From Zygnema circumcarinatum SAG 698-1b (taxonomy: Eukaryota; Plantae; Zygnematophyceae): 64,000 bases of DNA. The stretch covers positions 1,302,001 through 1,366,000 of the forward strand of contig CM074812.1 of NCBI GenBank assembly GCA_037447605.1, given 5' to 3'. Within the stretch, counting starts at the first letter, position 1. Every line of letters starts with the position of its first letter. The notes under the pieces were generated by a model. The model had not been told where the DNA came from. It worked only from the letters and a program-made list of their open reading frames with translations, and did no database searches. Below are positions 112 through 28,015 of this stretch, piece after piece. Made by a program: the position numbers and the translations under genes.

Positions 112-880
112 GCTGCCCGCCGCGTCCTCGTATCGTCCTCACTGTCAGTACATCAATTGTACGAACAATCCGTTTGTACGGAGGGCGCATGTGCGACAAT
201 AACGGATGTGCTGCCGCGTGGCACGTAGACAATGGCAGACCAGATCCGGGCAGGACTCACAGGAATAGAAACCTGCCCGGGGACGATTCAAGCAACAAGA
301 TTGGCTGAAAAAAGGTCACGCTGACGCCGACACTCGTTCCGGGCAGACCGAAATTGATTCGAGGACGAAACTTCGACGAAGCCCACCTTGAGGGGACGTG
401 CGTTTTCCTCTGATTTGCGACATTTGGATGACGTCGTATGATGTCCTATGCCGTCATATGTACGGAACTTGAGTGGACCAGAGGTTCTCAGCATTAAGGT
501 GAAATCGGCCAGCAACCAATGGAGACTCGCCACGTGGGCAGTTGTGTACACGTAGGACAAGTACGGTTCTAGAAGGGAGTTGGGGACCATGGAATTCATG
601 CCTAAAGACAACCAAAAGGAAATGAGGAGAACTTGGAAATTGACATTGGAAAGGGACCCAAAAGGGAAGTGGCTTGATTTAGGAATATGGAAGTGATCAT
701 GTGTATCAACCGTTGGAATGGTTGCCAACTATTGATTCGTGACCCAGCCAACCATTGCCCATGGTTGCCAACCATTGGACGACCAACCATTGCCATCCAA
801 TGGCTGTCCAATGGTTGGCGACTCCAGTGGTCCGACCACTGTTACTTTTTACAGATTGGTAAATTTAATTAAAGCCATTA

Positions 881-2117
881 GGGGGAGTCAGACCTTGACC
901 ATCGCCAAATCAATTTCGTAAGCCTGTCGGGCGAATTAAGCATTGGCTAGGTACGCATTTCTGTACGGCTGTGTACGGCGGAGCCGCGGATCCCGACCCG
1001 GAATTCGTACACGAAAGAAGGGGCGTTATTCTTCATTTCGCAGACGTTTGGCCGAAATTTTTGGCCCGGCGCAGACTATTATAGCTGTACGGAAAGCGTT
1101 AAGGAACTGCCTGGTTGCGATAACCATAGTTATGCTTGATTTCGCAGCTCGCGAAGAACCGTCGATGAAATGGGCGGACACGATGCCGCCAGGAAGGTAT
1201 TCGCATGGAGTGAATTCGCCGTTGCGTGACAAGCAACGCAACGGCTAAGTCGCCGCTTGGAGAGGGAGTGGTCCTGGTGGTTTCGAAGGCAGCTTAGCCG
1301 CCGCGTTCGCGTAGTACGCAATCCCTTGCGCGTTCAGTTCGCGCATGTGAAGGCGCGGCCCGACCCTTGGGCAAAAAAAGGAACTCACAGTATCACACAA
1401 GACACAAGCCACAATTTGAAACCAAGAGACAATTGTAAACTTGTACGAAATTGTAAAATGTGTAGAGACCAGTACATCGAGAGAACCGGACACACAACAA
1501 CTCGATGGTATGCGTTTACAAAATTCGAAACCTTGTATATATGAAATGGCTTTGTGTACAAATTTGATTGTTAAAAGTGTGAGTAGTTGCTAGTGGCTGG
1601 TATGAATGAAACCGGCGTTGTTTCCCTTGTTTGGTAGATCCTTCTGTCCAGTTTACAAACTTGTGTGCCTATAAAGGTTTGTAGGATTAGAGCCCGCCGA
1701 ATGGCATTGGTACGTTTACACAGCATTGCCTTTGTGCGCGTGGGAATGAGGGAGGGATGGAGGGAGTGTGCGATTGAGTTGAGTTGCGCGTTTTGTGTTT
1801 GTAAGTGTTTTCGAGTTTTTTTCTGTGTGGTTATAGTGCTGTTCCCAATGGAACTCGCACTCCAAAAGCCTAGCAAGATTATCTTATCGACAAATGTTTT
1901 GGCCTAGTTTATAAATTATCGGTCAAAAAGCTCTCAATGTTGAAAGTGTTGCAGGCTGGTGGCGCCTTCACGGTCTCTTGGTNNNNNNNNNNNNNNNNNN
2001 NNNNNNNNNNNNNNNNNNNNNNNNNNNNNNNNNNNNNNNNNNNNNNNNNNNNNNNNNNNNNNNNNNNNNNNNNNNNNNNNNNAATTTCGTAAGCGGTGGT
2101 CAAGGTCTGACTCCCCC
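881..2117. mobile_element. Non-autonomous TIR DNA transposon flanked by TA (contains an N gap)
   Basis: GGGGGAGTCAGACCTTGACCATCGC at 881 matches the reverse complement of GCGGTGGTCAAGGTCTGACTCCCCC ending at 2117 (1 mismatch in 25); TA on both sides; no transposase ORF seen. Confidence 0.7.
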
Positions 2118-4089
2118 TATTTGAGTACGGTAGACATTCTGAGGACCAGAATTGGAAAATGAATGGGCCGCTTAGTTCATTGAATTCTGGATACTTTTCG
2201 GAGCTGCTTTTTCGCACGCCCCGCGGCCGTAAAGGCCCAATCCGCCAAAGGGGCGCCAATCATTGCAACCATTCATTGGCAGACCAAGGGACCTCGCCGC
2301 CGAAACGGCTCGGCTTTAGGGCTGACGTCATGAAACGCTACCTGGTCACGTCACATTACGCCGAATGATCATGGTATGGGTATCCTACATTTCCTACTGC
2401 CAATAAGGTTCAGAAAATCGAACATTTTTTTGTTTTAATTGTTCAATGGTCAATTAAAAAAAAAAAAATTTCAGTTGGACGTTTGAACATAAGGATCGGA
2501 TGTTTTTGGAACTTGAGAATTTGAACAATATCAGAAAAAAAGTTTAAAAGTTGAATATTTTTCGCTTACACGTGTGGATTCCAAATCTTTATCTTGCCAC
2601 GAAAGATTCAAGCAGTCCGAGGGATTTCCTTAACTTCGGCCCAATTTTTGCCGTACGACGTTTTTCAACAGATCAACGATTACCATACGGTACAAATGGA
2701 TTCTACCAGTGTATTGCAATGTTAACCAGTAGTGGGTCCACCACTTTGCGATTAGCCAAAATCTCATCGTTGATCGGTGGATGCAAAGTAAATCGAATTT
2801 GAGCGCGATTGGGAGTTAATTGTTCAATATTTAACTGGATTCACATTGGATTCGCATTGAACGAGGACTGGATTCTCAAAAAAAAAAAAAAAAAAAAAAC
2901 ATATAGCACAAACTGTTTGTTTTTTGACCTACGGTTTTGAAAGCTTATTTTTTGAGAAGCCAAAATCTTTAATTTCTTACGCGTTCAACCTAATTGGTAG
3001 TAGGGTAGACCGTACTGTACCAGTTTTAATCCGTACAATAATAATAAAGTCCGTACAGATCTCCAAACGTTGTAAAACCGGTCGTTGGCAAGACCGCTTA
3101 CGGACACTACGAAATAGCAAAATGCCACAGCAAATACGTCAGCAGAAAATGTCCAACCAATCAGGAGCCGCTGACTACCCGTCGGTCAAGTTTTTGGCGC
3201 GTCGGATAGGGCGGTACATTTGTCGTTATGGTAAGCAACAAACTATCGTCAAATTGGAGCCGTATCGGGTATGACCGCATCACCTGCCGGCGCGGGTACC
3301 GTACTTCTGCCGGCCGAGATCCCTTTCGTACGCAATCAAACTTGCCGTCGCCGGCAGGTTTCTGTCGGCCAGATCCGAAACCTCGGCGATGTGACGATAT
3401 TATCTGGATTTCTCGAAAAAAACAATTTTTGGTCAAATTCGTACGGGTCTCTCACTTGGCAGCTTCCGATTGAAGATTTGAAAAAATGATTGCTGAGGTC
3501 TCCACTGTGCGCATAGAGATCTCTTGGTGTGCCCTTACTGCTCTTATTGACTTGACCCTCTGGCCTGCCACGTGTCGCTCTCAAACGCCGTCAGCCGTAC
3601 ACCCTTCAGATTCGAATCGGATTCGAACGCTGATGGACCCGCCCCTTTACAGAATCGGCTCTGATGCTTGTCGTTATCTGCGGGCCTCCGCCAATCCTGA
3701 CGCAGAATCGGATACGGAACCCCGCCGCCCGCGACGTTCGCAGAAACGACGAACTCCACGCTGGCGCCAACAGGACAAGTGGAGCCGGCCGGCCATTAAA
3801 CGCCCACTTGTCACGTGGCGCCGCGCCGGCTCTTCGGTCGCTTCCCCCCACTCTCGCCCTAATCTCGCCCGCCCGCCCGCCCCTCCCTCCCGCTCCCTAC
3901 TCCGTCCCCCTCGCTCCTTCCCTCCATCTCCTCCCTCCCTCCCTCCCTCCCTCCCTCCCCCACTCACTACCTCCCCCTCCCCCACTCCCCCCCACTCCCT
4001 CCCTCCCCCACTCACTCCCTCTACCTCCCCCACTCCCCCCCACTCCCCCCCACTCCCTCCCTCCCTCCCCTACTCTCTNNNNNNNNNNC

Positions 4090-5719
4090 ATGGCTTTCCA
4101 CCCCCCCCCTCCTCCTCCTCCTCCCCCGCCCCCCCCAGCAATAAGGACCCCCCCTCCCCTCCCATAGCGCGGTCTCAGTCCCCCAGCTCTCACATTCTGG
4201 GCGTTCCGTACAGCAACGTGGAGGAGAAGTACGAGCTTGGCCCGCAGGTTGGCAAGAGTCTGGGCGGGGTCGTACGGCGGTGTACTTTGCGGCGGACGGG
4301 GGAGGCCTTCGCCTGCAAGTCGCTCGAGAAGAAGAACGTGACAAATGTCGACGATGTGAGGGCGGAGGTCCGCGCGCTGAGGAAGGTGTCCAGCCATCCC
4401 GGAGTGGCCGCGCTGCGAGCAGTCGTGGAAGATGAGGAGGTGGGGGGCTCGAGTTTCTCTAATTGCTTTTTTTAGGGTTGTAGGGGGGGTGAAGGGGGGG
4501 GGAGAGAGAAAGGGGGAGGGGGGGGAAGAGAGAAGGGAGGGGGAGAGAGCGAGGTTGGGGGAGAGAGAGAGAGGGGGAGTGTGAGAGGGGGGGGAGAGAG
4601 AGAGGGAGAGTGAGAGAGAGGGAGGAGAGGAAGAGGGGGAGTGATTGAGAGGGGGGGGAGAGAGAGGGGAGGAAGAGAGAGGGCTTGGGGGAGAGAGTGA
4701 ATGGGGGTGAGAGAGGGGGGGAAGAGAAAGTGGGGGTGGAGGAGAGAGAGTGAGAGAGAGGGTGGGGGGGAGAGAGAGACAATGAGAGAGAGAGAGGAGT
4801 TAAACTGATTAAACTTAGGGTGTTGTAAGTGCATGTGGAAAAGAGCATTTGTTAGGGTTGGTGGGGCTCACATTAGAGGGGGGGTCTGACCTGCAGAAGG
4901 TGCACATCATCACGGAATTCTGTGAGGGGGGGGACCTCTTCTACCGCATCAAGCGGAGGAAGGTATTTCCGGAGAGCGATGCTGCCCAGATCTGCCGCAC
5001 TCTGCTCTCCGCCGTTCACTACTGCCATAGAAACGGCATCATGCATCGCAACTTGAAGCCCGAGAACGTGTGGATGGCCTCTCTGCGCTCCGACTGCGAT
5101 GTCAAATTGGCGGATTTTGGGCAAGCAGGTTTCTTCAAACCGGGAGCGAAGCTGAGTGAAGCTATTGGAACTCCGTGAGTTACTTCAAACCCTTCAAATC
5201 TCCATCGCCATAGCAACCCTCATTTCTCCTCTCTCTCTCTCTCTCTCGCTTTTCTTCTCTCACTTTCTCTCTCTCCCTTCCCCACCCCTCCTCTCTCTCT
5301 CGCTCTTGTGCTGTCTCACCTTCATCTCTTTGACTTATCTTTCACCTCTTTTACTTCACTACTACTACTTCTTTGACTTCTTCTTACTTCTTTGACTTTC
5401 TCATCTCTCTCTCTCCCTCTCTCATCGGCAGATATTATGTTGCTCCGGAGGTTTTGAAACGCTCATATGGCCCTGAGGCAGACGTATGGAGTCTGGGGGT
5501 CATTCTGTACATCCTGCTCTCCGGAATGCCGCCCTTCTGGGCAGAGTCACGCGAAGCCATTTTTGAAAAAATCAAAGCAGGCGTGGTCAGCACAGAAGGA
5601 GGGATCTGGGACAATATTTCTGACAAAGCCAAGCAGCTCCTGCGACGCATGCTCTGTGTAAACCCTTCTGAGAGAATCACTGCTAAAGAAGCTGAAGGTG
5701 CGTATCTCTCTCTCTCTCT

Positions 5720-12636: not shown

Positions 12637-13214
12637 GTGTATCTTTCTAAAAAGGTGTGTATCTATCAAAAAAGGTGTGTATCTCTCAAAAATATGTGTA
12701 TACTGTACATCCAAATAAGGTACGCGTCTTTCAAAAACAGTGTATATCTATCCAAAAAAGGCGTGTGTTTATCAGAGAGGTGTGTATCTAGCCAAGTTAG
12801 GGTGTATATCTTTCAAAAACGGAGCGTATCTATCCAAAAAGGGTGTGTTCATCAAAAATATGTGTATCTACCCAAAAGAGGGTGTACATCTTTCAAAAAC
12901 GGAGCGTATCTATCTAAAAAAAAGGGGTTTCTTTATCAAAAATGTGTGTATCTAGCCAGAATAAGGTGGATATCTTCTAAAAAAGTGTGTATATATCCAA
13001 AAAGGATGTGTGTTTATCAAAATGCTGTGGATCTAGCCAAAATAAGGTATATATCTTCCAAAAGGTGTATATCTTTCCAAAACGGGTGTGTATTTTCCAA
13101 AAATATGTGTATCTATCTGAAATAAGGTGTACATGTTGATCTTTCAAAAACAGTGTGTATCTATCCAAAAAGGTGCATGTTTATTAAAAAGATGTATATC
13201 TATCCAGAAAGTGT
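12637..13214. repeat. Degenerate minisatellite, ~20-21-bp unit (GTGTATCTATCCAAAAA(A)G), with ~4-mer higher-order structure
   Basis: Roughly 28 units read by eye. The block GTGTA(T/C)ATCTTTCAAAAACGGAGCGTATCTATC recurs about 80 bp apart (~12802 and ~12881). Confidence 0.85.
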
Positions 13215-13467
13215 AAATATATATATATTCCTGGAATCTAATACAGACACTGCGTTATAATATCCATCCCCAAATGTACGGACGGTACAAAGTGGAGTGT
13301 ACGGATGCGTTGAAAAAGGAGCGGCGGAAGTTGGCGCCTTCCGCACGCGCGGGGAGTGTGGGAGAGGGAGAGGGAGAGGGAGAGGGAGTGGGAGGGAGAG
13401 GGAGGGGGAGAGAGAAGGGGAGGGGGGAGAGGGAGGCGGGAGAGGGAGGGCGAGCTGAGGGGGCAGG

Positions 13468-16400
13468 ATGTCCGCCATGGCTATTCCTCCCCAGCTCGCG
13501 GTGGGGCAGCCGTACCGCTCTCAGAATATCCTTGCTTCTGCTCGCCGCTCTGCAGGAGCCTCTTATCGAGCTATGAACAAGCGACAGCTGGCGCTTATTA
13601 CCGCGGCAGTAGCGCTTCTCCTAGCTACCATGTACAGCCTCTTGTGGAGCTCCTCCCGCGCGTGGACTTCTCCATGGCCGCGCACAGGGGGGGCCAACTT
13701 CGTGCTCTTCAGCGACGGACATGTGAAGGCAACAGATCCTTCACTGGGCGAGGGAGAGGTCAGTCGGAGTGAAGCGAGCATGGCGGGAGAGGGGGGAGAG
13801 AGGGAGAATAAAGGGATGGAGGAAGGTAGGAAGGATGAACAGGAGGAAGACGGGAGCGCCTCTGCAGGAGCTCCTATAGGGGAAGGGTTCGAGTTGGGAG
13901 CAAAAGCCATGGCTTCCATGGATTCGAAGTGTCCCCCTGGTTGCTGGGATCACGGCCATGGCTCCTGCAATGAGGAGCTTGGGCGCTGCGATTGCGTGAC
14001 GGGCTTCACGGGCCCTTCATGCGGGGATCTTGCAATGCCAGCGTGCCACCTGGCACCCGGATACTCTGCCATCTGCCAAGTCCCATCTTCCTGTGCTTGC
14101 GGGCTTCAATGTGACCGGTTTCGCATTCCCCACAAGCAGCCATGTTTTGACGAGCGGAGGGGGGAGGGGGAAGAGCCGGAGACGGATGTGGTAGCGCTTT
14201 ATAAAAGACCACAAGTGCGGATGCTGACTGATTTGAAGGGGAATGAAACGGAAGAGAGACGGCCAGCTAGTGAGGACGAGAAGTTGAAGGATGAATACAC
14301 TCATCCCGCGGAATGTCCGGAAATGTGTCATGGTCGAGGGGCCTGCGTTGCAAGCAGTAAAACTTGCCAGTGAGTGAGAACTCGATCCTACCCTATTTAG
14401 GTTCTTTCTATGTGGAGAGTGGGTAGAGAAAAAGAATTATTGTCAAGTTCTGAATTTTGGGGCTTTAAGTGTAAGTCAGAAGTGGGTGGAGAGGGGGAGA
14501 AGTTATGACAAGGTCTGACTTGGTTAAAGGTTAGAGCTTTAAAATGGGCCACACAGACCTTGAAGGTGGAACTGTCCCAAGCTCACTGCTTGACAGCGAC
14601 GATTTTTTGGTTTTCGTTAATGAAGAAGTTGACAAAGATAATACCTTTATAATATCTTTCACGTTAAGGTGGGATTTGGTGGTCGCAATTTGCCACAACT
14701 TCTCCATTATCCACTTATTTTGAGAAACGGAAAGAAACCGACGACAACGACAAATTTTATTTGAAAGAGACCTTTTCCTGCTTGAGCAAGCGCCGCCCTA
14801 AGGAAGTAGTGTTTGAAAGTGATTAGAAACAGAAAAATGTTGCATTGACATAGCACGCATTTGACCAAGGTAGTGGGAGAACCCCCCCCCCCCCTCGCTC
14901 TCTCTCTCTTTCTCTCATGCTTCTCAACAACCAGAACTTGTAAGAGGCCCATTTGCACTTCGTCATGTGTTTCCAGATGGCTGTGCAACTTGCTTGCCAA
15001 CCTTGTAGAGAGTCGTCTTTGGCGTAAGTTTCGAAACCAAAAGTGAAACTTTGAACCCCTTGTGGTTTTTGAGGGCAGATGTGTATGGGGTTGGAGTGGA
15101 ATTTCCTGCAAAGACGAAGTATGGAGCTCCCTATTTCATTGCATGAGCAACTGCAGTGGTCACGGAGACTGTTTGGGCTTCGTTTGTCGCTGCCACCGTG
15201 GATATTTTGGAACAGACTGCTCCCTATTTCTCGGTTCTGACGGAAAAGCTCAGTAAGTTCAAACATTTTCCTTGTTTTTTTCTTCTGAAGGAGAGTAAAA
15301 GGTTGTGAGAGGAATGGGAACAGGAGTGAGAGATGGAGGGACTGGGAGAGGGGAGAGGAGGGAGAGAGAGGGAGGGAGGAAAGCTGGGGAGGAGGAGCGA
15401 TGGGTGGTAGAGCGAAGTGAAGAGAAGGGGAGGGAGGGATGAAGTAAGACAAGGGAGGGATGTGCAGATACCTAAGGTGGTTCATGGACCTTCTTTTTTG
15501 TTTCTGATAATTGTGGAACGAGCAATAAAATAAAAATAAAAATAATAAGTAATAGTAATAGTAGTAGTAGTAGTAATAGTAGTATAGTTATTTAGTAATG
15601 GAAAGACGCTCAGTATCAAATGTCGGCTCGAGATTGATCCATCTTCAGGTCAGTCATATTATGGCTGAACATTCTGTTGGCTAAGGTCGACATGAAATCT
15701 CAGGTACATACTGGGTAATGCAGAATGGTGCCCCGACCGCCCTATCTTTGGACCGAGGCTGTGCCTCCAATGCCTTTGGGGAGTGTGGCAAAGCCCCGAA
15801 TTTACGTATATGAGCTTCCAGGAGAATTCAACACGTGGCAGTTTGACCATTGGCCCCACGTGGACTGGCCAGAAGAGCGCATCTTCATGGAACGCATGTT
15901 AGCGAGTCCGTACCGTACTTTAGATGGAGAAGAAGCGGACTACTACTATGTGCCCTTAGTGCTGAGGTGTGTAGTGCTCCAACCCCAAGAAATCCTTGCA
16001 TTGTTTCTGCAAACCATGGTTTGTTTACAACTTCAATTTCTGGCAATTTCTCAAGTAGGGTTTTTTCCTGCTCTGCGTGATGTCTTGCACAGGAATCGAA
16101 ACGAAGCAAAAGAAGCACTCGTGAATTGGGTTGTGGAATACATCAGCGAAACGTGGCCCTTTTACAACAGAAAGGACGGTGCAGATCACATCTTTCTTAC
16201 AAATGGGGATTGGGGGAACTGCGAAGTGAGCATTTGGGGTGGCTCGGATCCCACATTAGCAAAGAGCATCACCTTGACATTGTGGGGAAACACACGCAAC
16301 ATGTGGCTAAAGAATGATGACAAAGACTTGCTTCCATGCTTCCGTCCTGGTCAAGATATAGCCATGCCTCCCTTTCTTGACTGGAATGTCTACCAATACA

Positions 16401-19400
16401 CTCCTTGGCTAAAGGAAGATTCTGAAAATCTCCCTGCTAGAACAGTTCTTCTCTATTTTAAGGGCTCAAGTGCTAGAGATTCGCCGTTTGTTGGGCCGTA
16501 CACGTGGAGTTTTGGGGTTCGCCAGAAAATGTTTGAACTCTATGAGGGGAAAGAAAAGGAGACGGGAATTCGCGTGCTTGAGCAGAAGGGCTATGTAGAG
16601 GGCTACTTGGAGGGTATGTCGAAAGCCATCTTCTGCCTTGCTCCCTGCGGATGGGGGTGGGGGATAAGGGCGACTCAAGCTGCATCTGTGGGCTGCATTC
16701 CGGTGGTGATTCAGGTATGGTTTTTTTGTTCATCTTTGTTCTGGTGGTTGTTCGTTTACTTTTGGTGTTTTTTGTTTTGCTGTTGTTCATCTTGCTGAAG
16801 TTCTGGTTGTTGTGGTTGTTGTCCTTTCTCTTTTGTTCTGTCTCTCTGTCTCGCTCCCTAACTCTCTCCCACTTCCCTCCCTCGCCTGCTCCCTGTTTCA
16901 TTTGTAAACCTTCTGCAATTGCACTTTTTCTTTCACTGCATATAAGCTTCTTCTGTATTTGTGGTGCATCTGATGTGCAGCCGGGAGTTGTACAGCCCTT
17001 GGAAAAGGACCTTCTCGATTGGTCCGAATTTTCTGTGATGCTTCAGTTTGACGATATACCGCGCATTGCCGATATTCTGCGAGCGATCTCAGAGGAAGAA
17101 ATTCAACAAAAACGCGAGAAATTAGCACAAGTGTGGACGAGATTCGCTTGGACTTCCTCCCAGTTTAACCCCCTCGCCCTCCTCCCCAAGGAAACACAAG
17201 ACAAATTCGCCCCTCTACTTGCAGAAAAGGATGCCTTCGCCTCACTCATGGAAGCTCTCGGCCGTCGATTGGAACGGAAAACTGAACAGAGTGGAACTGA
17301 ACAGAGTGGAACTGAACAGAGTGGAACTGAAGATAGTAGGACTGAACAGAGTACTACATCGAAATGTGCAGGAAATTGTGTTCACGGTTCTTGTAATGAG
17401 GAAATGGGTGAATGCTATTGTTTAGGGGGATATAGCGGCCCCACTTGTGAAGACTTTGCAATGCCTTCATGCCATCTTGCCCCAAACTATTTCACTCCCT
17501 GCTACCTTCCCACATCTTGCGGATGTGTGGCAGAATGTGAAGCGTACCATTTTCTACATGAGACAACATGCTATGATGAAAAATTAAGCGATGGGGGAGT
17601 CGAAACGGACATAAAGCGGTTATATGCGGGTCCTCAAGCGAAGATTCAGTTTAGCTCTGAGGGGAAAGAGATTACTAGGGAGAGAATTCGACCAGAGGAT
17701 GGTTTTGGAGTTCGGTATGCGAGCCCGGAATTTTGCACTGCAAGCTGCTCTGGACATGGGGTCTGCAACACTGAAATTGCATCCTGCGAGTGAGAGCCTC
17801 TCACTCTCTCTCACTCACTCTCTCCCTCCCTCCCTCCTCNNNNNNNNNNCCTCCCTCCCTCTCTCCCTCCCTCCCTCTCTCCCTCCAACACCTTTTGAAG
17901 TCAGGTTTCGGCAACTTTAGCAGCAGGCAATTGCTCCAGCATAGCCAGTCCCATGTTTCCTTCATACCTCTGAGTGTTTAGAAAGCTTTAAAACCAACTA
18001 TTTGATGTGAATAATCTGACCCATAGTCCCTTGCAGGTGTGCGTGGGCTCATTCCGGAGAGAGCTGCTCATCTCCGGGTCCAATTCCCTTTCCATGTGTT
18101 AATCTGTGCTCAAATAACGGCCAATGCCTGGACGGAACTTGCAAATGCAACCAAGGTTTCTTCGGAATCGACTGCTCTTTACATATGGATGAAACTGGCC
18201 GTCCAAAGTGAGTCACTCGGTTTTTGGTTGTTGTTTAGAAAGGAGGAAAGCAAGTAGGAGGGGTAAAGAGGGAGGGGCTTGAAGTTTAGGGCAAATGTGA
18301 GATCTGACCCTCTCTTTTTCTCTCTCTCAGAGCCATAGAACGACCGGAACTTTCATGGGTTAAGCATATTCCTGCTAATAGAGGAGACATCCGTCCACGA
18401 ATTTATGTGTATGAGCTGCCAGGGCAGTTCAACACGTGGCAGTTTCAACAGGGGCCTTATCAAAACTACAACATGGAAGCTCCGTATTTTTTAGAACGGC
18501 TGCTTGCAAGCCCGCACCGTACAGCCAATCCGGAGGAAGCAGACTACTTCTACCTCCCTCTCTTTCTCAGGTGACTGCTTCACCTTCACCTTGTGCTCAA
18601 ATATTCATTTTGGATGACGGTTGTAAAACAGCTTTCTACTTGACAACTCTAATTGATTCGAATTTACTGCATAGAAACTGTTTGGATCATGACATAACTT
18701 GAGGTTTTTTTCACTTCTCCGATGTGATGTCGATAGGAGCCGCAAATATCAGGCAAGGGCAACTCTAAAAGCTGCTGTTGAGTACGTGAAGGAAAAGTGG
18801 CCATATTGGAACAAAAACGGGGGGAAAAATCACATTGTTTTCGCATCATCTCGGTGGGGAAAATGCGATTTAAGCATAAAGGGAGAGGGAGAGCAATTCC
18901 TCACTTCCATGATTTTCATCACACTATGGGGGATGACTAAGAGCATGTGGTTGGAGGAAGGTAAACTTCCATGCTTCACATATGGCCATGATATTGTGGC
19001 CCCTCCTATTCCACAACAAGTATTAGAAGCAAATGTGCATTTAAAGGAGTCTTCTCAGATAGAAGCAGACCGGCCCATACTCCTCCTTCTTCAAGCCAAT
19101 AAAGAGGGAGTTTCACCGGAAGAGGGAGGAGTATCTATCTACAGCTTTGGAGTAGTGCAGCGGATGTTCGAGCTGTATGAGGGGAGGGAGAAGGAGACCG
19201 GTATCCGAGTGGTTTCCACCTTTGAAGGTGACATAGTGGTGGAGGAAATGGAGCGGGCTATCTTCTGTTTGGCCAGCACTGGGGAGGGATGGACCATGCT
19301 CGCTGCGCAGGCAGTAATAATGGGCTGCATTCCGGTCGTAATTCAGGTATGCATCCATTCTGACTATCTCTCTTTTCCCCCTCTCTCTCTCTCTCTCTCT

Positions 19401-22400
19401 CTCTCTACTCTCTCCTCTTTCTCGCTACTCTCTCCTCTTTCCAGTCTCTCCTCTCCTCACTTTCTCGCTCTCTGCTCTCTCTCTCTCGCTATCCCCCGAT
19501 CTTTGCTCTTCTCCCCCTCTTCCTTTCTTTCCTTCCTTTCTGTCCTCNNNNNNNNNNCCTCTCCCTCTCCCTCTCCCTCTCCCTCACGCCCTCTCCCCCC
19601 CCCTTCTCCCCTCTCATTGCAGCTGTCCATGGACGTACGGTGGAAGGTCCTGCGAGCAGAGGGGAGCTGTCGCCATAGTCTGCTTTAACGGCTGCAGCGG
19701 GAGGGGGACATGCTTGGGAGGGGCCTGTAAATGCGATAGGGGATTTTTTGGAATAGACTGTGCACTTTATAAGGACGCGGAGGGGCGAACAAGGTGTGTT
19801 TTGTTTACTCACTTCTTCCACAAATTCTTTTACTGCTGTTACTGAGCGTATTCCTTTTTTGTTCCCCTCCTCAAGCTTGATATACTTGAATCTGGAGTTC
19901 AAAATGGTTGCGTTAAGGGCAAGTGAAATGCACCTGGCAAGCGGACTAAAGAGTGGGGTTTGTTTATTTATACATTTTTATGTTTGTTTATTTGTATACT
20001 TATGTGGGTGCTTTCTTTGCAGGGTGTTAAGGAGAGCCCCTTTTCCGTGGGTTGAGTCTCTGCCGGCCCCTTCACCAGGGCTCATTTTCCGTCCCAAAGT
20101 GTATGTGTATGAGATTCCCCAGTACTTAAACACGTGGCAATATCAGCACGAGCCATGGATGGATTGGCCGGAACAAATTTACTTTCTTGAGCGGCTGCTT
20201 TCTAGCGGATATCGCACTGCAAACCCGGAAGAAGCGGACTATTTCTTCATCCCTCTCATGCACAGGTGGGAGGATGTTCTCTCCCTCTAGCAAAGCAGAA
20301 TATGGTTAGGAAAGATCAACATTCTGTGGAAACAATGAATGTAACAATGGCATTAATTCCCCTTATTTAGGGCTGTTTTGGTGATGGGTTTGCAGGAACC
20401 GAGGAGGCATAAAAATGCAAACGATTGTAAGGGCAGTGGAATATGTAAAGAACACTTGGCCAAAATTCTGGAACAGGTATAAAGGAAGAGATCATATAAT
20501 AGTCGACAATGGGGATTGGGGAATTTGCGAGCTTGGCCCCTATGGCCAGGCTGAACCCTTCTTTGATCAGATGATTGTTATTACATTATGGGGCCATACA
20601 CGAAACATGCATCTCCAGAGAACGCAGCCCTGCTTTAGGCCCGGAAAAGATATAGTAATGCCTCCTGTTATGGTCGATGCCGTATATGAAAATTCGCCCC
20701 ATTTAAAGGAAAATTCAGAAGCAAAGGAAAGGACAATTCTGCTTTACTTCAAAGGATGGGATGCTATTGGGTCGAATCCCTTTGGACCGTATCATTGGAG
20801 CTTTGGAGTTCGACAGAAAATGTTCGAGCTCTATGCTGGGAGAGAAAACGTAACTGGAATCCGGTTAGAGGGAACGGTTCAGTTCACATATGTGGATAAC
20901 TTTATCGAGCAAATGACTCGCTCTATCTTTTGCCTTGCTCCTAGCGGATGGGGATGGGGTATGCGCACCACCCAGGCAGTCATTTTGGGATGTATACCTG
21001 TGGTTATACAGGTGAGTGGTGGGCCTCGCTTTTTCCACAATCGCTCTCTCTCTCTCTTTCTCTCTCTCGCTCTCGTCTCTGCTGCATTACTGTTGTTCTT
21101 CGTCATAAGTTAGCGTGTTGTATGTCATTCACTTCATAGTTTCTATAAATGGAGACGTCAGTCATAGAGAGAAGAGGAAAAAGAGGAAAATAGAGTAGAG
21201 AAAAAGAGAGAGTTGGAAAAGGTAGGAGTTTTTTTCGCTCCCTAATTGTTTGTTTTTGGGGTGGAGGAGCAGCCATCTGTGGTGCAGCCTCTGGAAGGAG
21301 AGCTCCTAAACTGGGAGGAATTTGCTGTCGTACTCAAATTTGAGGATATTCCCAACATAGAAAACATACTACGCTCCATTTCTCCCGATATTATCGCCAA
21401 AAAGCGAGAAATAGGGGCTCAAATATGGACCCGTTTTGTATGGAGCTCTCCCTCTGTGAACCCTCTCATAGCCCATAGCAGAGAAGTGCAGGAAATGTGG
21501 GCTCCAATACTGGCCGAAAAAGATGCAGTGGCTTCAGTTATGGAAATTTTGGCTAGGCGGTTAAAAACAAGAAATTCTCCTACCACTTGGTTAGGAGGAG
21601 CTTCACTAGAAAACTTAAAAGGCATAAAATTTGCAAGCGATTTGTTTTCAGATTTCAAACAGGCAGTTTCCTCAATTCTGGGGGGTCCTGAGACTGACAG
21701 TAATTTGAAAAATCTGGCGGAGGAGGAAACTTCTGCTACCTTACCTGCTGAAAAAATTGACCTTATTCCTTCGGCTTGTCCGGAGGGATGCTGGGATCAT
21801 GGAACATGTAATGAAGAAATGGGTCGATGTGAATGTAAGGGAGGATATAAGGGCCCCACTTGTGAAGAATTAGCTCTTCCTTCTTGCCATTTAGCCCCAA
21901 ATTACTACACCCCATGTGGGTATTTGAGCACCTGTGGCTGCACCTTAGAGTGCGAATCTTACCGGTTTCGAAAAGAAAATTTTTGTTTGAATGAAAGAAG
22001 GGCCGATGGGACCAATGAAACGGACATTGTGAAGCTTTTTGCAGCGCCCCAAGTTTTTTTGTTCACTGATGGAGAAGGCAAGGAAATTGGCCCAAGGCGT
22101 GAACTTCCAAAAGAGAAATGGAAGAACGAATTTACGTCCCCAACAGAGTGCGAAAACAGCTGTTCAGGCCACGGACTATGCACTGCTAAAGACAAGCATT
22201 GCTTGTAAGTTAATTTTTGGTTTGTTTCGAACACCTGTTTTGCTAACTAATGCCCAGAAGCAAACTGTATATTACCTTCATTGAACTGAGATATTTCGTG
22301 GGTTTGATTTCTTTCAGGTGTGCGTGGATGCATGGAGGCCGGGACTGTTCGCAATATGGGGACATACCTGTAAAGTGTTTCAATGAATGCAGCGATCGCG

Positions 22401-25400
22401 GAGAATGCTTGGACGGAGTTTGCAAATGCAGGAGACCCTACTTTGGAATAGACTGCTCCCTTTCTATAGGAGCAGACGGCCGAACAGAGTAAGGAAAACA
22501 GCATGCTTTTTCGGCAGAAAAGAAAAAGGATCCTGCGGAACTGACCTTCTTAGCCATAAACGAGCGACCTTTGCTGGAAATAATTCTAACTATTTTTGAC
22601 ATTTTTCTGCAGAATTATGCGGAGGCCCCCATTTCCATGGTCGGACGCTGTTCCTGCTCCTTCAGCAGATGAAAAACCTCGACCGCGGGTTTACGTGTAT
22701 GAACTGCCCGGATACTTCAACTCGTGGCAATTTCAACATAGCTTTTACCTCGATTGGCAGGAGCCAGTTTACTTCCTGGAGAGGCTTTTGGCAAGCCCTC
22801 ATCGCACAGCAGACCCAAAAGAAGCGGACTACTTCTACATACCACTCATTCTCAGGTGCACCTCCTTGCCCTCCCTCTCCCCTCTCCCCTTTCCCCTCTC
22901 CCCTCTCCCTCCTCCCCTCCTCCCCTCTCCCCTCTCCCTCTCCCCGCTCCCTCTCCCTCTCCCTCTCCCTCTCCCCTCTCCCCTCTCTCCTCTCCCCTCT
23001 CCCCTCTCCCCTCCCCTCTCTCCCCTCCTCTCCCTCTCCCTCCTCCCCTCTCCCCTCTCCTCTCCCTCTCCCTCTCCCTCTCCCTCTCCCCGCTCCCCGC
23101 TCCCCCGCTCCGCTCCCTCTCCCTCTCCCTCTCCCCCTCTCCTCCTCTCCCCCTCTCCTCTCCCTCTCCCTCTCCCTCTCCCCTCTCCCTCTCCCCTCTC
23201 CCTCTCCCTCTCCCTCTCCCTCCTCCCCTCTCCCTCTCCCCTCCCCTCTCCCCTCTCCCCTCTCCCTCTCCCCCTCTCCTCTCCTCTCCTCTCCCTCTCC
23301 CCTCTCCCTCTCCCTCTCCCCTCTCCCCTCTCCCCTCTCCTCTCCCTCTCCCTCTCCCCCTCTCCTCTCCCTCTCCCTCTCCCTCTTCCCCTCCCTCTCC
23401 CTCTCCCTCTCCCCTCTCCCCCTCTCCCCTCTCCCTCCTCCCCTCTCCCCTCTCCCTCTCCCTCTCCCCTCTCCCCCTCTCCCTCCTCCCCTCTCCCTCT
23501 CCCCTCGCCCCTCTCCCTCCCCTCTCCCTCTCCCCTCGCCCTCGCCCCTCGCCCTCTCCCTCTCCCTCTCCCTCTCCCTCTCCCCTCTCCCTCTCCCCTC
23601 TCCCTCTCCCTCTCCCTCTCCCTCTCCCTCTCCCTCTCCCTCTCCCTCTCCCCCTCTCCTCTCTCTCCCTCTCCCCTCTCCCTCTCCCCTCTCCTCTCCC
23701 TCTCCCCTCTCCCTCTCCCTCTCCCTCTCCCCTCTCCCCCTCTCCTCTCCCTCTCCCCTCTCCTCCCCTCTCCCTCTCCCTCTCCCTCTCCCTCTCCCTC
23801 TCCCTCTCCCCTCTCCCCCTCTCCTCTCCCCTCTCCCTCTCCCCTCTCCCTCTCCCCTCTCCCTCTCCCCTCCCCTCTCCCCTCTCCCCTCTCCTCTCCC
23901 CTTCTCCCTCCCTCTCCCTCTCCCCTCTCCCCTCTCCCTCTCCCCTCTCCCTCTCCCCTCTCCCCTCTCCCCCTCTCCTCTCCCTCTCCCTCTCCCTCTC
24001 CCTCTCCCCTCTCCCCTCTCCCCTCTCCCTCTCCCCTCTCCCCTCTCCCCTCTCCCCTCTCCCCTCTCCCAATGGACTTACCTCTATTCTTAGATGAGTG
24101 TGTTTGTTTTGAATGCTTTTGAGGACAAAACGAGGTGCTTTCATTCTGCAGGAACCGCAACGGCCCGGCAACTCTTCTATGGGCCCTCGATTATGTTCAG
24201 CAGACATGGCCTTTTTGGAACGCGTCAATGGGAAGGGACCACATTGTTATGACAAATGGAGATTGGGGAAACTGCGAGATTGGAGAGTATGGAGTGGGGG
24301 AACCTTTGCTTGACGGAGTGGTGACCTTTACTTTGTGGGGGCACACAAAGAACATGAGGCTAAAAATGGATCAACCCTGCTTTAGGAAAGGGAAAGATGT
24401 GGTTATGCCGCCTCGCATGGTGCCCGATGTCTTTTGGCATGTTCCCATGCTCAAGCGCATGTTCATAAAACATGTGAACAATTCAAAGGAGAAGGTCTTA
24501 GTAAATGAGTGGGGGCCCAAGTTGGAAATTCCGAAGCGCAAAACGCTGCTTTTTTTCAAGGGCTATCCGGCACTCGATTCTACAGTGGGACCCTTTACTT
24601 GGAGCTTTGGTGTTCGGCAAGAAATGTTTAAACTCTACGCCAATAGGGAGAACGAGACAGGCATCCGCTTATTGAGCACGGAGGGGATGGTGTGGGGCTA
24701 CTTGGAGGAGATGGAACGCTCCATATTCTGTTTGGCCCCCAGTGGGTGGGGATGGGGAATGAGGGCCACGCAAGCAGCCATTGTTGGATGTATTCCGGTC
24801 GTAATTCAGGTAACGAATGATTTCATTCCCAGCCGCTCTTCCGCTCCGCTCAACTCCCCTCCCCCCCTCCCCCTCCCCCATCCCCCTCCCCCTCCCCTCC
24901 CCCTTCAACCTCTACCTCCCCCCCTCCTCTCTCCCCCCCTCTTGCCCTCCCCCCCCACCCCCCCCCTCCCCTCCCTGTCCCTGACCCTGCCCCTCCGCTC
25001 CCCCCCCTCTCCTTCTCTCTTCCCCTTCCTTTATTGCCAGCTCTTTCTCCCTCTCCCACCCCCCCCCAGCTCCCCTTCCCCGCGCATCCCTTTTAATCCC
25101 TTTTATTTTTTTTCTTTCTCGTTTCCATTTTTGACTGAGGTGTGTCTGCAGCCTGGAGTGGTGCAACCGCTTGAACACGACCTTCTTGACTGGGAAGAAT
25201 TTGGAATACGCCTTGAATTTGAAGACATCCCACGGATAGAACAGATTTTGAGGGCAATTCCGGAGGACGTAATTCAAAAGAAGCGGGCGGCATGTCAGAA
25301 GGTGTGGACCCGGTTCACGTGGGCGAGCTTCTCTCTGAATCCTCTCAAGGAATATCCGCAGGAAATTAGAGACAAGGTGGCGCCTTCTTTAGCATCAAGT

Positions 25401-25469
25401 GATGCTTTCTCATCCTTAATGCAAGCTTTGGGTAACAGGTTAATCAAGAAAGGGAAGATCAAATCTTAG
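13468..25469 (+). CDS. Type II membrane protein with four tandem modules of EGF-like repeats + exostosin (GT47) domain; one or two genes depending on the content of the gap at 19548-19557
   Basis: Exons 13468-14369, 15079-15252, 15724-15966, 16093-16714, 16981-17789, 18037-18207, 18331-18570, 18737-19346, [gap], 19623-19793, 20023-20265, 20396-21011, 21273-22204, 22318-22488, 22613-22855, 24152-24809, 25152-25469. Each module has CxxxCxxHGxC EGF motifs, P(R/K)(I/V)YVYE, EADY(F/Y), DHI, FCLA...GCIPVVIQ. N-terminal hydrophobic anchor [20 protein letters not shown]. Confidence 0.88.
17281..17352 (+). repeat. In-exon 15-nt repeat (ACTGAACAGAGTGGA, TEQSG) in the linker between GT47 modules 1 and 2
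   Basis: Three near-perfect copies followed by two degenerate ones. Confidence 0.9.
22857..24069. repeat. ~1.2-kb almost pure C/T tract (CCCTCT-type units) filling a GT47 intron
   Basis: Only a few G residues between the donor at 22856 and ~24069. Confidence 0.95.
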
Positions 25470-25474
25470 TTCTG

Positions 25475-25597
25475 TGTAGGGTCTGCTGAATTCTGTTTTA
25501 CAAACATTAGAAACTGCAATTAAAACGGCATTATGATCTGTAGGGTCTGCTGAATTTTGTTTACTAAACTTAGAAATTACAATCAGAACGGCATCAT
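25475..25597. repeat. Tandem duplication of ~64 bp between the converging GT47 and SDR stop codons
   Basis: TGTAGGGTCTGCTGAATT...AACGGCAT(T/C)AT starts at both 25475 and 25539. Confidence 0.85.
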
Positions 25598-25637: not shown

Positions 25638-28015
25638 TCACCATGGAATGTCAGATCCGTCCCAGGCAAAGAATTTCCCGTTGTCTTTCGGGCCAACACT
25701 GTTGATAATTTTCATCAAACACTCCACCGAATATTGCCTCGTAAAAAGCTTCCCATCTGGAACATTCCTTTGGAAGGGTTTGGAAAGGTCCGTGTCCACG
25801 GTGCCCGGATGCAGAAGTATAGCCACAATGGGCGACTTTTTTCTCGCTAGTTCCACAGCCGCTGTTCTCGTCACTGCGTGATAGAAACCAATAAAAAAGT
25901 TGATGAAAGTAGTGTAGCTGTAGAGCGAGAGATTAAAAAAAATAGGAATAAAATCAAAAGATTAATTGGGTTGGGTGCATAGATAGCCATGGAAACTCAC
26001 ATTGGTTAAGGGCACTCTTCGAGGCGCGGTAGGCGTACCACCCTCCCAGACTGTTATCTCCAATGGACCCAACTCGCGCACTCAAGTTTGCAATCACAGC
26101 TGCCTCACGGCCCGCCCCTCGGCCCCCCCCTGCAGCCAACAAGGCTGCCATGTGCTGCAAAAAAGAGAAGGGGAGAGAGAGGGAGGGGAAGGCGGGAGGG
26201 AGGGGGGGGAGGGNNNNNNNNNNGGGGGATGGAGAAGGGGGGGAGAGGGAGGGGGAGGGGTGGATGGAGAAGGGGGGAAGAGGGAGGGGGAGGGGGGGAT
26301 GGAGAAGGGGGGGAGAGGGAGGGGGGGGGGGGGATGGAGAAGGGGGGGAGAGGGAGGGGGACGGGAGGATGGAGAAGGGGGGGAGAGGGAGGGGGAGAGG
26401 GAGAGAAAGAGGGAATGAGAGGGGGAGAAGGAGAAGGAGTGAGAGGGGGTGAAAGCAATATGTGAGCATTCCCTCCACAGTTTGGGATTATGGTATGTAC
26501 ACAAACACGGAGAAAGTAGGTACCTTAATGACAAGAATGGGCCCCATAGCGTTGATCGTATATGTGAGCAGAAGCGCCTCTGGATTCACACGTTGTAATG
26601 ATGTCTCTGTCCGCCCCTTCCCTCCAAACTCATCACAGACAGCTTCAGCCCTCCAGGAGCTGTCTAACATTCATAGACTATGGCACAGCAATCCAGTTAA
26701 AAATGAAGCTGTGCTTGAGCCCTTGCATTGGGTCGCCAACTCATTAACCAAACGTTTAAGCAGATTTACAAGTTATATTATTCACTCAGTCGAATAAACA
26801 GCGCACCTGGCTGAAGCTGTTCTGGGATATGCAATATTCCAGCCGTGTTTATCAGCAAGTCCAACCTTCCATAGTTGTCCTTCACCTCCTTTGCAGCAGC
26901 CTATTCCCACCGCTGCCCTGCATTCTCGTTAAGGGAGCAAGCCCAGCAAAAAATAGCATCCGAGCAGGTAAGCAACCGGCACTCACTCAGACATGCATCC
27001 AGCCATGAGTTAAAGTTAGATTTAAAAAGCTTACAGCAATAGTGTCCTCTACTGTCACGTCAAGCGGTAATAGAGCAAGGCGGTTTCCATGCTTCTCCTT
27101 CAACGCTGACAGTTCAGTCGCAGTGCCGGGATTGCGACAAGTAGCAACCACGTGGCCTTCGGGACGTGTCTCCAAAAGTTGGCGAACCTGCCAAAATGGT
27201 AAATCATGGATTTTCCTCTTCAGTTCAAATGAATATCTAATGGTTGTTGACTGCAGCTTCACCTCGAAGATTTTAGAAAAATATTCAGAAATATTTCATG
27301 GGCCCATCATGGTTGTCTGCTGCTTATGCTTTTTTCTAATTGGATGCGTTTCTCAGCATTCAATTTCACTCTTTGAGCTTCGATCGGTACTAATTACCAT
27401 GCTTTCAACTTCATGCTATGAGCTTCCCATGCTTCTGTGTATTGACTAAAAAGGTCCAGCTTCATTAGCCTACTTTCATGCTATCTGTAGACCTCAAGCC
27501 TCTTCTGTTCAACAGCGAAATCATGGCTTCATTAAATTAACAGAACATCTTTAAAATTTTAGAAACCCAAAACTCACTGAAACTCACTGAGTAAGCTTAC
27601 GTTTGCTAATTGGAAAAGGTTAAGAACTGCTTTATATTGAATTGATGAAAAGTCTTGAAACCCAAAGCAATCCGATAAAGCAAAGCCCAAACTTGTTAAT
27701 GAAATTGCAATTACACAAAAATCCCACGGAGAAAAGGCGTAGGAAGCCACTAACAAACTCCAATCCTAAGCCGCGAGAAGCCCCTTGGACCAATGAGACC
27801 CCGCCAGGTGTCAAATCGCTGGAAAGCGCCGCGCTGCTGGCAGCCATGGCTCTCAAGAAGCGCATTTCTGAAGAGGGCGCGGGCCGGCCTGGCTGGCGGA
27901 GAGCCGCTGCTCCCTTCACAGTGAACGGGAGAGCTTGGGCTGCACTTGACGATGAAAATCGCCGGCAGCCATGGCTGCTTGCTGCCACAGCTATCCGCCA
28001 GAGAGCAGCAGCCAT
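25638..28015 (-). CDS. Short-chain dehydrogenase/reductase, C-factor (CsgA)-like, with organelle-targeting-like N-terminus
   Basis: Six exons give SLVQGASRGLGLEF|VRQLL...LDVT...|GRLDLLINTAGILH|NAMGPILVIK|ANLSARVGSIGDNSLGGWYAYRASKSALNQ|LTRT...LHPGTVDTDLSKPFQRNVP...FFAWDGSDIPW, with the GxxxGxG and YxxxK motifs. Confidence 0.92.

Follow-up and report, generated by a model that had tools for sequence, protein, structure and literature searches.

Can a single algal gene encode a chain of four glycosyltransferases? The question is raised by a locus of the zygnematophyte Zygnema circumcarinatum SAG 698-1b, on the plus strand at positions 13468–25469 of a window of 64,000 nucleotides (nt) (GenBank assembly GCA_037447605.1, contig CM074812.1, positions 1,302,001–1,366,000; all coordinates below are those of the window). 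An earlier note on this DNA had described four units there, each an EGF region followed by a GT47 domain, and had proposed that together they form one Golgi polyprotein of ~3000 amino acids (aa) that arose by internal gene duplication and works as an assembly line. GT47 enzymes build the side chains of xylan, xyloglucan, pectin and extensin; in published descriptions the plant enzymes have one domain, and those of animals pair GT47 with GT64. We consider it likely that the locus is one nuclear gene for a single type II membrane protein of ~2661 aa, carrying four tandem units that resemble the extensin arabinosyltransferase ExAD and having arisen by duplication of a whole set of exons.

Sixteen exons are visible, and all introns begin with GT and end with AG; exon borders were set by homology between the repeats together with the splice signals. 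De Bruijn contigs from four publicly available runs of this organism, placed on 16600–22550, lack the introns, with joints precisely at each predicted splice site within their reach, and are therefore RNA, and the displayed pieces, which come from at least three studies, have 0 differences to the exons. The exons belong to a set, A-B-C-D, that recurs in all four modules with common intron positions and phases, as had been noticed earlier. Type A exons (809, 863 and 932 nt, the 863-nt exon known from RNA only) encode the C-terminal ~100 aa of a GT47 domain, a linker and a first EGF/Cys-rich region; they start at a codon boundary and end two bases into a codon. Type B (171–174 nt) encodes a second EGF-like region and type C (240–243 nt) the start of the GT47 domain, both in phase 1+3n+2, and type D (610–658 nt, phase 1+3n) encodes the GT47 core, which closes with CIPVVIQ at a codon boundary.

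The place of the A exon in module 1 is taken by exon 1 (13468–14369), which holds the start codon, a cytosolic tail of ~40 aa, the anchor, an acidic stem and the first EGF/Cys-rich region; it is supported by its open reading frame (ORF), its hydropathy, an EGF_2 match and a GT donor, and its N-terminus is homologous to that of the ORF in a transcript contig, L001, discussed below. Exon B1 (15079–15252; AG/GT borders, phase 1+3n+2) is 41–43% identical to B2–B4. Splice borders and the module alignment define C1 (15724–15966), the N-terminal part of GT47 domain 1 with its RIYVYELP motif, and D1 (16093–16714), the core ending in CIPVVIQ, is joined in the RNA to the next exon (16711/16714 to 16978/16981). 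Module 2 continues with B2 (18037–18207), seen in RNA contigs and by its splice borders, C2 (18331–18570; RNA joints 18207 to 18331 and 18568/70 to 18735/37) and a degenerate core, D2 (18737–19346). The corresponding exons of module 3 are B3 (19623–19793; RNA contigs and splice borders), C3 (20023–20265; RNA joints and 29.1 bits against the Pfam model PF03016) and D3 (20396–21011), and those of module 4 are B4 (22318–22488; RNA joint 22204 to 22318), C4 (22613–22855; 37.5 bits against the same model, and a loose contig end behind 22488 that is the start of this exon) and D4 (24152–24809). The last exon (25152–25469) belongs to type A but is truncated by the stop codon; it encodes the C-terminal end of GT47 domain 4 and is 52–62% identical to the matching parts of the junction exons. 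In a tblastn search of the entire window all EGF and GT47 pieces fell within 13825–25466, and a Pfam scan of ten neighbouring long ORFs gave nothing useful.

The modules are read into one another through these junction exons. The first (16981–17789, 809 nt) passes from the last ~100 aa of GT47 domain 1, across a linker of TEQSG repeats, into the EGF/Cys-rich region of module 2. The second (21273–22204, 932 nt) leads from the GT47 C-terminus of module 3 through a linker of ~75 aa with a WLGGA motif to the EGF/Cys-rich region of module 4, where EGF_Teneurin and EGF_2 match. Both are open frames with RNA coverage, and neither contains a stop codon or a hydrophobic segment; at least two two-module fusions are therefore certain from the DNA alone, and the read-through from module 1 to 2 and from module 3 to 4 within single exons was correctly called in the earlier note. 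Over ~2370 codons the visible frame is unbroken. The sole stop codon of the gene model is at 25467–25469, and the sole segment of transmembrane strength comprises residues 41–59 (hydropathy 2.25), the next peaks being the conserved GCIPVVIQ strands; the gene thus has the one N-terminal anchor and the one stop that had been claimed for it. With the exon that the assembly lacks entered as unknown residues, the spliced model has a coding sequence of 7986 nt and 2661 aa, so that the length of ~3000 aa was an overestimate.

Between modules 2 and 3 the genome sequence is incomplete. D2 ends at a codon boundary (19346), the first base of B3 (19623) completes a split codon, and direct joining of the two would shift the frame; for this reason a linker exon had been postulated in the 10-N assembly gap at 19548–19557. 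Such an exon is present in the RNA contigs of two runs. Between 19346 and 20393 these contain 1274 letters (X1 record 2, 7028 nt; X6 record 12, 5828 nt), from which subtraction of B3 (171) and of C3 (240 after 3 ambiguous bases) leaves a hidden exon of 863 nt, and a 2544-nt contig (X2 record 4) has 1035 letters behind 19346, fitting 863 + 171. The assembly has thus lost one junction exon and parts of two CT-microsatellite introns. The hidden length, 287x3+2, has the phase of the other A exons and preserves the frame. After 19346 the contigs read CCGGACGTA and then 21 letters identical to 21282–21302; the exon, which begins CCGGACGTAGTGCAG... (PDVVQ...), opens in translation with the QP.V.QPLEG motif of the family, as do A exons elsewhere. 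Its content is the end of GT47 domain 2, a linker and the first of the EGF regions of module 3, and it is very likely to be open across its whole length with the frame continuous. Of the four EGF+GT47 units originally described, all four possess the GT47 part, and the EGF region of module 3 is visible only in part, its first portion lying in the hidden exon.

Another candidate for the start of the hidden exon, a loose contig end behind 19346 (CCTGGAGTGGTG...), was rejected, as 30 of its 30 letters match the sequence with which the last exon begins (25152). Skipping from D2 to the last exon, which would be in frame and give a two-module protein, was rejected as the main form: the last 18 nt of D2 are the same as those of D4, pieces as short as 21 nt get placed, and the main contigs continue with different letters. 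The loose end is best read as cross-placement of the junction between D4 and the last exon, a rare skipping isoform being possible.

The other gap of the locus (17840–17849) lies within a CT microsatellite in the intron 17790–18036 and conceals nothing coding: contigs of runs X1, X2 and X6 join 17789 to 18037 at consecutive contig coordinates. The introns of the gene are rich in sense-strand CT (polypyrimidine) microsatellites (17795–17891, 19364–19615, 21044–21080, 22873–24070 and 24854–25026), and both assembly gaps fall in CT-rich repeats. The tract at 22873–24070 is a (CCCTCTC)n microsatellite on the plus strand of ~1.2 kb and ~182 copies that fills most of the C4–D4 intron (Tandem Repeats Finder; GC skew -0.63). 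Gaps of 10 N in this assembly can conceal whole exons, and others of the kind may do so too; gene models drawn from it would likely break or frameshift the EGF-GT47 gene.

Proteins predicted from the organism itself could have supplied the missing letters. An exhaustive protein search with exon D2 returned no match from this organism, the best match being 41% identical, and word-index searches with P0151, P0003 and the junction exon 21273–22202 found none in the collections searched. As P0151 and the 2661-aa model have 202 five-residue words in common, proteins of the organism would have been caught, and it follows that those collections do not contain them. No match came either from looking up the exact ORF product 20415–21110 or from an exact scan of metagenome contigs with the first 30 nt of the hidden exon.

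The contigs support one gene comprising modules 1–4, as the earlier note had supposed, and show that it is expressed. A 7028-nt contig of run X1 starts at 17302, within the 1→2 junction exon, covers modules 2–4 and extends ~1.3 kb past the stop codon, and an upstream contig of 1851 nt reaches back into exon 1 and ends at 17309. The break between them lies inside a 15-nt tandem repeat (17280–17352) of the junction exon, where the genome is continuous, and is a typical failure of de Bruijn assembly. This repeat encodes (TEQSG)x5 in the 1→2 linker, and its length could vary between strains. A joint that goes backwards, from 18445 to 16600, and a loose end before 18398 were considered as rearrangements and dismissed, since exon C of module 1 had been cross-placed on exon C of module 2. 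One contig of depth 2.77, found in run X3 only, joins 17750 to 18071 with non-canonical TG..CA ends and thereby drops 73 exonic bases, which would shift the frame; an artefact is the probable explanation, or else an infrequent splicing error.

The family membership of the modules is clear from the Pfam scan that had been suggested as a check. The D exons of modules 1, 2, 3 and 4 match PF03016 (Exostosin_GT47) with 87.2, 66.0, 78.3 and 74.2 bits, against a cut-off of 33.4, and EGF models match the A-type exons. GT47 and EGF models are the only ones to match; GT64 has no Pfam match in any exon translation. A profile of 20 relatives found the solved GT47 structures of EXT2 (3.7e-18), EXT1 (3e-13) and EXTL3 (2.4e-8), for which a single exon as query had given no match. 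Among named proteins, those most closely related to the modules are EGF-domain GT47 proteins from green algae, from a haptophyte and from a land plant. ExAD of Arabidopsis (At3g57630) is the extensin arabinosyltransferase of GT47 clade E that adds the fourth arabinofuranose, in alpha-1,3 linkage, to Hyp-Ara3, and it comprises a membrane anchor, two EGF-like domains and a GT47 domain (PMC5371791). Module 1 has this complete layout, with a type II anchor, two EGF-like regions and a C-terminal GT47 domain, and modules 2–4 have EGF and GT47 parts and no anchor; instead of the one catalytic unit per polypeptide of ExAD there are four in one frame. Each module thus resembles ExAD-type (clade E) enzymes, a likeness that does not imply orthology to ExAD proper.

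The modules are not equally well preserved. Among 20 relatives of the clade (haptophyte, chlorophytes, Klebsormidium, land plant and zygnematophytes) 48 columns are near-invariant, and module 1 keeps 46/48 of them, modules 3 and 4 keep 47/48 each, and module 2 keeps 31 of the 39 that are visible. Five columns identical in all 20 relatives are altered in module 2: NGD-WG has Arg for its Asp, (Y/F)FKG has Leu for Phe and Ala for Gly, GVRQ has Val for its Arg, and G-M-R-A-T-Q has Leu for its Arg. The Asp of NGD/NDD-WG and the Arg residues of G-V-R-Q and G-x-R-x-T-Q are present in modules 1, 3 and 4. The last of these Arg residues aligns with the Arg of the EXT1 RFLE motif, 3 residues before the position of EXT1 Glu349, a region in which inactivating EXT1 mutations cluster (PMC9178029). 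EXT2 also lacks Arg at this position in the HMMER alignment, and the GT47 domains of EXT2 and EXTL3 are inactive (PMC13389171). The branch of module 2 in the module tree measures 1.22, against 0.21–0.29 for the other modules of the window. Given the five invariant residues lost and the longest branch, module 2 is probably a pseudo-enzyme. Modules 1, 3 and 4, which keep the invariant residues of the family, are probably active sugar transferases. The conservation of modules 3 and 4, which individually possess neither start nor anchor, makes sense only if translation reads through to them.

In characterised GT47 enzymes an Asp or Glu at the C-alpha-4 position (EXT1 Glu349) binds the donor ribose (PMC9178029). 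At this position, where EXT1 has the Glu of RFLE, each of the four modules has Gln. The same Gln (R-x-T-Q) occurs in all streptophyte-algal relatives, Val in the chlorophytes, and Glu in the haptophyte and the land plant; judged by this distribution, the Gln is a trait of the clade and not a sign of decay in the gene of the window.

How did four modules come to lie in one gene? Region by region they are 40–62% identical to each other, and on this comparison of sequences they are old duplicates of the whole exon set that have since diverged, not copies made by the assembly. The module tree holds EGF-GT47 relatives found by homology only, among them a single land-plant sequence whose branch is long, and contains neither Arabidopsis ExAD nor other GT47 clades. 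Zygnematophyte modules form one clade in it (87/96 support), which places the duplications within the zygnematophyte lineage. Common intron phases, the level of identity and the tree all agree with the internal duplication and divergence proposed from the DNA letters.

The earlier note had also suggested a search for multi-GT47 proteins in related genomes, and these exist. In an exhaustive protein search with exon D2 multi-domain proteins rank at the top. Closterium sp. NIES-67 has a predicted 'hypothetical protein' of 2517 aa (GJP79125.1) with three modules, the first and third degenerate and one canonical; Closterium Naga37s-1 has a predicted protein of 2041 aa, again with three modules, and Mesotaenium endlicherianum one of 1631 aa with two (ME000147S01071). 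The sampled relatives from Klebsormidium, Mesostigma, chlorophytes, a haptophyte and a land plant contain one GT47 domain each. The protein collections searched, which do not include the organism of the window, yielded no protein with four modules, and full-text searches of the literature returned no description of multi-GT47 proteins, their coverage being incomplete and the result an absence of evidence only.

Transcripts extend the comparison. The 5146-nt contig L001 (run SRR8128907) has the homologous N-terminus with anchor and a module 1-type unit followed directly by a module 3-type unit; these are 65–67% identical to modules 1 and 3 of the window and are their sisters with supports of 100/100 and 100/95. 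Its frame (392–4885) has no module 2 and stops inside the WLGG linker, and the letters beyond (4886–5146) are T-rich and look like a retained intron, so that the true protein may be longer than the frame. Fragment P0004 contains the end of one module, the WLGG linker, an EGF region and a terminal module 4-type unit; fragment P0009 contains the end of a divergent module, a linker, an EGF region, a module 3-type unit and the WLGG linker. Open junctions of the 3→4 type (P0004) and open junctions before a module 3-type unit (P0009) thus occur in other transcriptomes. Exon D3 is sister to module b of P0151 (100/95). The motif of the 3→4 linker, T/S-W-L-G-G-A/G-x-x-E...K/R-F at about residues 1990–2015, is conserved between species (P0151, P0004 and P0009) and lies outside the recognised domains.

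Some of the evidence weighs against a single four-unit enzyme. The hidden exon has been read for its first 30 nt only, and an in-frame stop is possible in the remainder. No contig bridges the repeat at 17280–17352, where the contig overlap is 8 nt; the RNA support as a whole consists of de Bruijn contigs, not of single reads; and the depth of the module 1 contig in run X1 is ~7-fold below that of the remainder (13.4 vs 98.6), a drop that we read as 3' bias and that could also reflect an internal start. In runs X2 and X6 depth over modules 1, 2 and 3–4 is 63.5, 59.6 and 147.2 (X2) and 49.2, 32.9 and 63.7 (X6), a spread within ~2.5-fold. The Gln at C-alpha-4 makes activity and donor uncertain. 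The incompletely read exon, the unequal depths and the L001 frame that stops inside a 3→4-type linker, possibly in a retained intron, would all suit a gene with two products, in which a stop, an alternative promoter or an alternative first exon within the hidden exon yields an anchored protein of modules 1–2 and either a separate product or an untranslated tail from modules 3–4. We regard this as improbable. The earlier note had itself allowed that the gap might hold a stop, a promoter and a new anchor; what the RNA contains is an exon spliced on both sides that starts with the QP.V.QPLEG motif, has the very phase that is needed (863 nt, 3n+2) and leaves no room for an intergenic region, so that what remains of the idea is a possible stop beyond the first 30 nt. 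Modules 3 and 4, moreover, keep 47/48 near-invariant positions in spite of having neither a start codon context nor a hydrophobic anchor, and P0009 has an open junction before its module 3-type unit.

Two further explanations accept less, or more, of the single frame. The two assembly gaps might raise the suspicion of an assembly artefact, of separate tandem genes misread as one, or of a pseudogene. This is scarcely credible and already contradicted: modules only 40–62% identical are not collapsed or duplicated copies, two of the junctions lie inside single exons, the visible frame is intact, and RNA contigs from several studies agree with the exons and use every predicted splice site that they cover. 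The other explanation is a polyprotein in the strict sense, in which a protease of the secretory pathway cuts the linkers, for example at RRLE/RRLK-like motifs, and frees modules 2–4 as soluble or complex-bound enzymes. Each GT47 domain does end in such a basic motif followed by a low-complexity linker, and plant Golgi subtilases cut sites of the R-x-L-x type. The same motif, however, ends the terminal module of this gene and the single-unit or terminal modules of Klebsormidium, Closterium and P0004, that is, true C-termini; as processing sites the motifs were rejected on this ground, and they more likely form the last helix of the fold, to go by where they occur. Freed modules would also lack an anchor for retention in the Golgi. 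Cleavage is accordingly unlikely, if a little less so than two products, and of the term 'polyprotein' the single chain of four modules stands and the cutting does not.

A single uncleaved chain would be a Golgi membrane protein whose lumenal part consists of four EGF/Cys-rich plus GT47 units on flexible linkers. The type II anchor fits the Golgi enzyme that had been envisaged, a location that we infer, as we do the substrate class and the cooperation of modules. By analogy with ExAD (PMC5371791), it may glycosylate hydroxyproline-rich wall glycoproteins or related glycans. The tethered units could work on adjacent sites or carry out consecutive steps, with the EGF regions as possible recognition parts, and module 2 would probably serve as a non-catalytic spacer, scaffold, holder or binding unit, a fate with a precedent in the inactive GT47 domains of EXT2 and EXTL3. 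An assembly line is one way in which such an arrangement might work. More tentatively, zygnematophytes, the algae most closely related to land plants, may have evolved a covalently tethered glycosylation line, in which two to four ExAD-type units with EGF recognition regions share one Golgi anchor. The active units (1, 3 and 4) would have diverged and would add successive or neighbouring sugars to Hyp-rich wall proteins in one pass, dead units would be spacers or lectin-like holders, and land plants would have reverted to, or kept, the single unit. We think this more doubtful than otherwise. Four complete EGF+GT47 units in one chain, with forms of two to four units across the Zygnematophyceae, are an architecture not mentioned in the searchable literature. 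The reasons for physical coupling among Golgi transferases can be studied on them as a natural experiment, and they offer a route to the role of the EGF-like domains of ExAD.

The flanks of the gene are repetitive. A 20/80-nt tandem array of ~28 copies of a GTGTATCTATCCAAAAAGGT-like unit (12637–13211) lies ~250 nt upstream of the start codon, and a (GGGAGA)n run (13351–13454) ends 14 nt before the ATG. Downstream, the extension of the X1 contig beyond the stop (25470 to ~26770) implies a long 3' untranslated region, splicing, or overlap with a neighbouring transcript. Such an untranslated region would cross a 63-nt repeat (25475–25594), GA-rich repeats (26167–26455) and an assembly gap (26214–26223).

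Comparison with known systems shows both where the protein belongs and where it departs. Every module has the order of ExAD, an EGF-like/Cys-rich part and then GT47, and module 1 shares its type II anchor. ExAD is one catalytic unit of ~790 aa, whereas the protein of the window has four in one chain, three of them without an anchor and one degenerate, and its modules have Gln in place of the C-alpha-4 acid where the land-plant relative has Glu-Asp. Closer are the multi-module proteins of Closterium and Mesotaenium, which fall in the same clade of the tree and show the same order of fusion, from GT47 C-terminus through linker and EGF region to the next GT47. In the Closterium protein, too, intact and degenerate modules occur together, one canonical and two degenerate. 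Modules number two or three in these proteins, which are predicted gene models, whereas the gene of the window has four modules and RNA support; the modules of the different proteins need not be one-to-one orthologues. More distant are the animal exostosins EXT1, EXT2 and EXTL3 (PDB 7SCH, 7ZAY and 7AU2), which share the GT47 domain and are also multi-domain proteins in which some GT47 domains are inactive (PMC13389171). They combine GT47 with GT64 and act as dimers, whereas the protein of the window would hold four GT47 domains with EGF spacers in one chain and has no GT64. Since heparan sulfate is not known from plants, the substrate of the exostosins is certainly different from that of the Zygnema protein. 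Module 2, like EXT2, is without the Arg of the EXT1 RFLE motif, and with a probable pseudo-enzyme among probable active units the gene may offer a parallel, in the plant lineage, to the pairing of enzyme and pseudo-enzyme in the animal exostosins.

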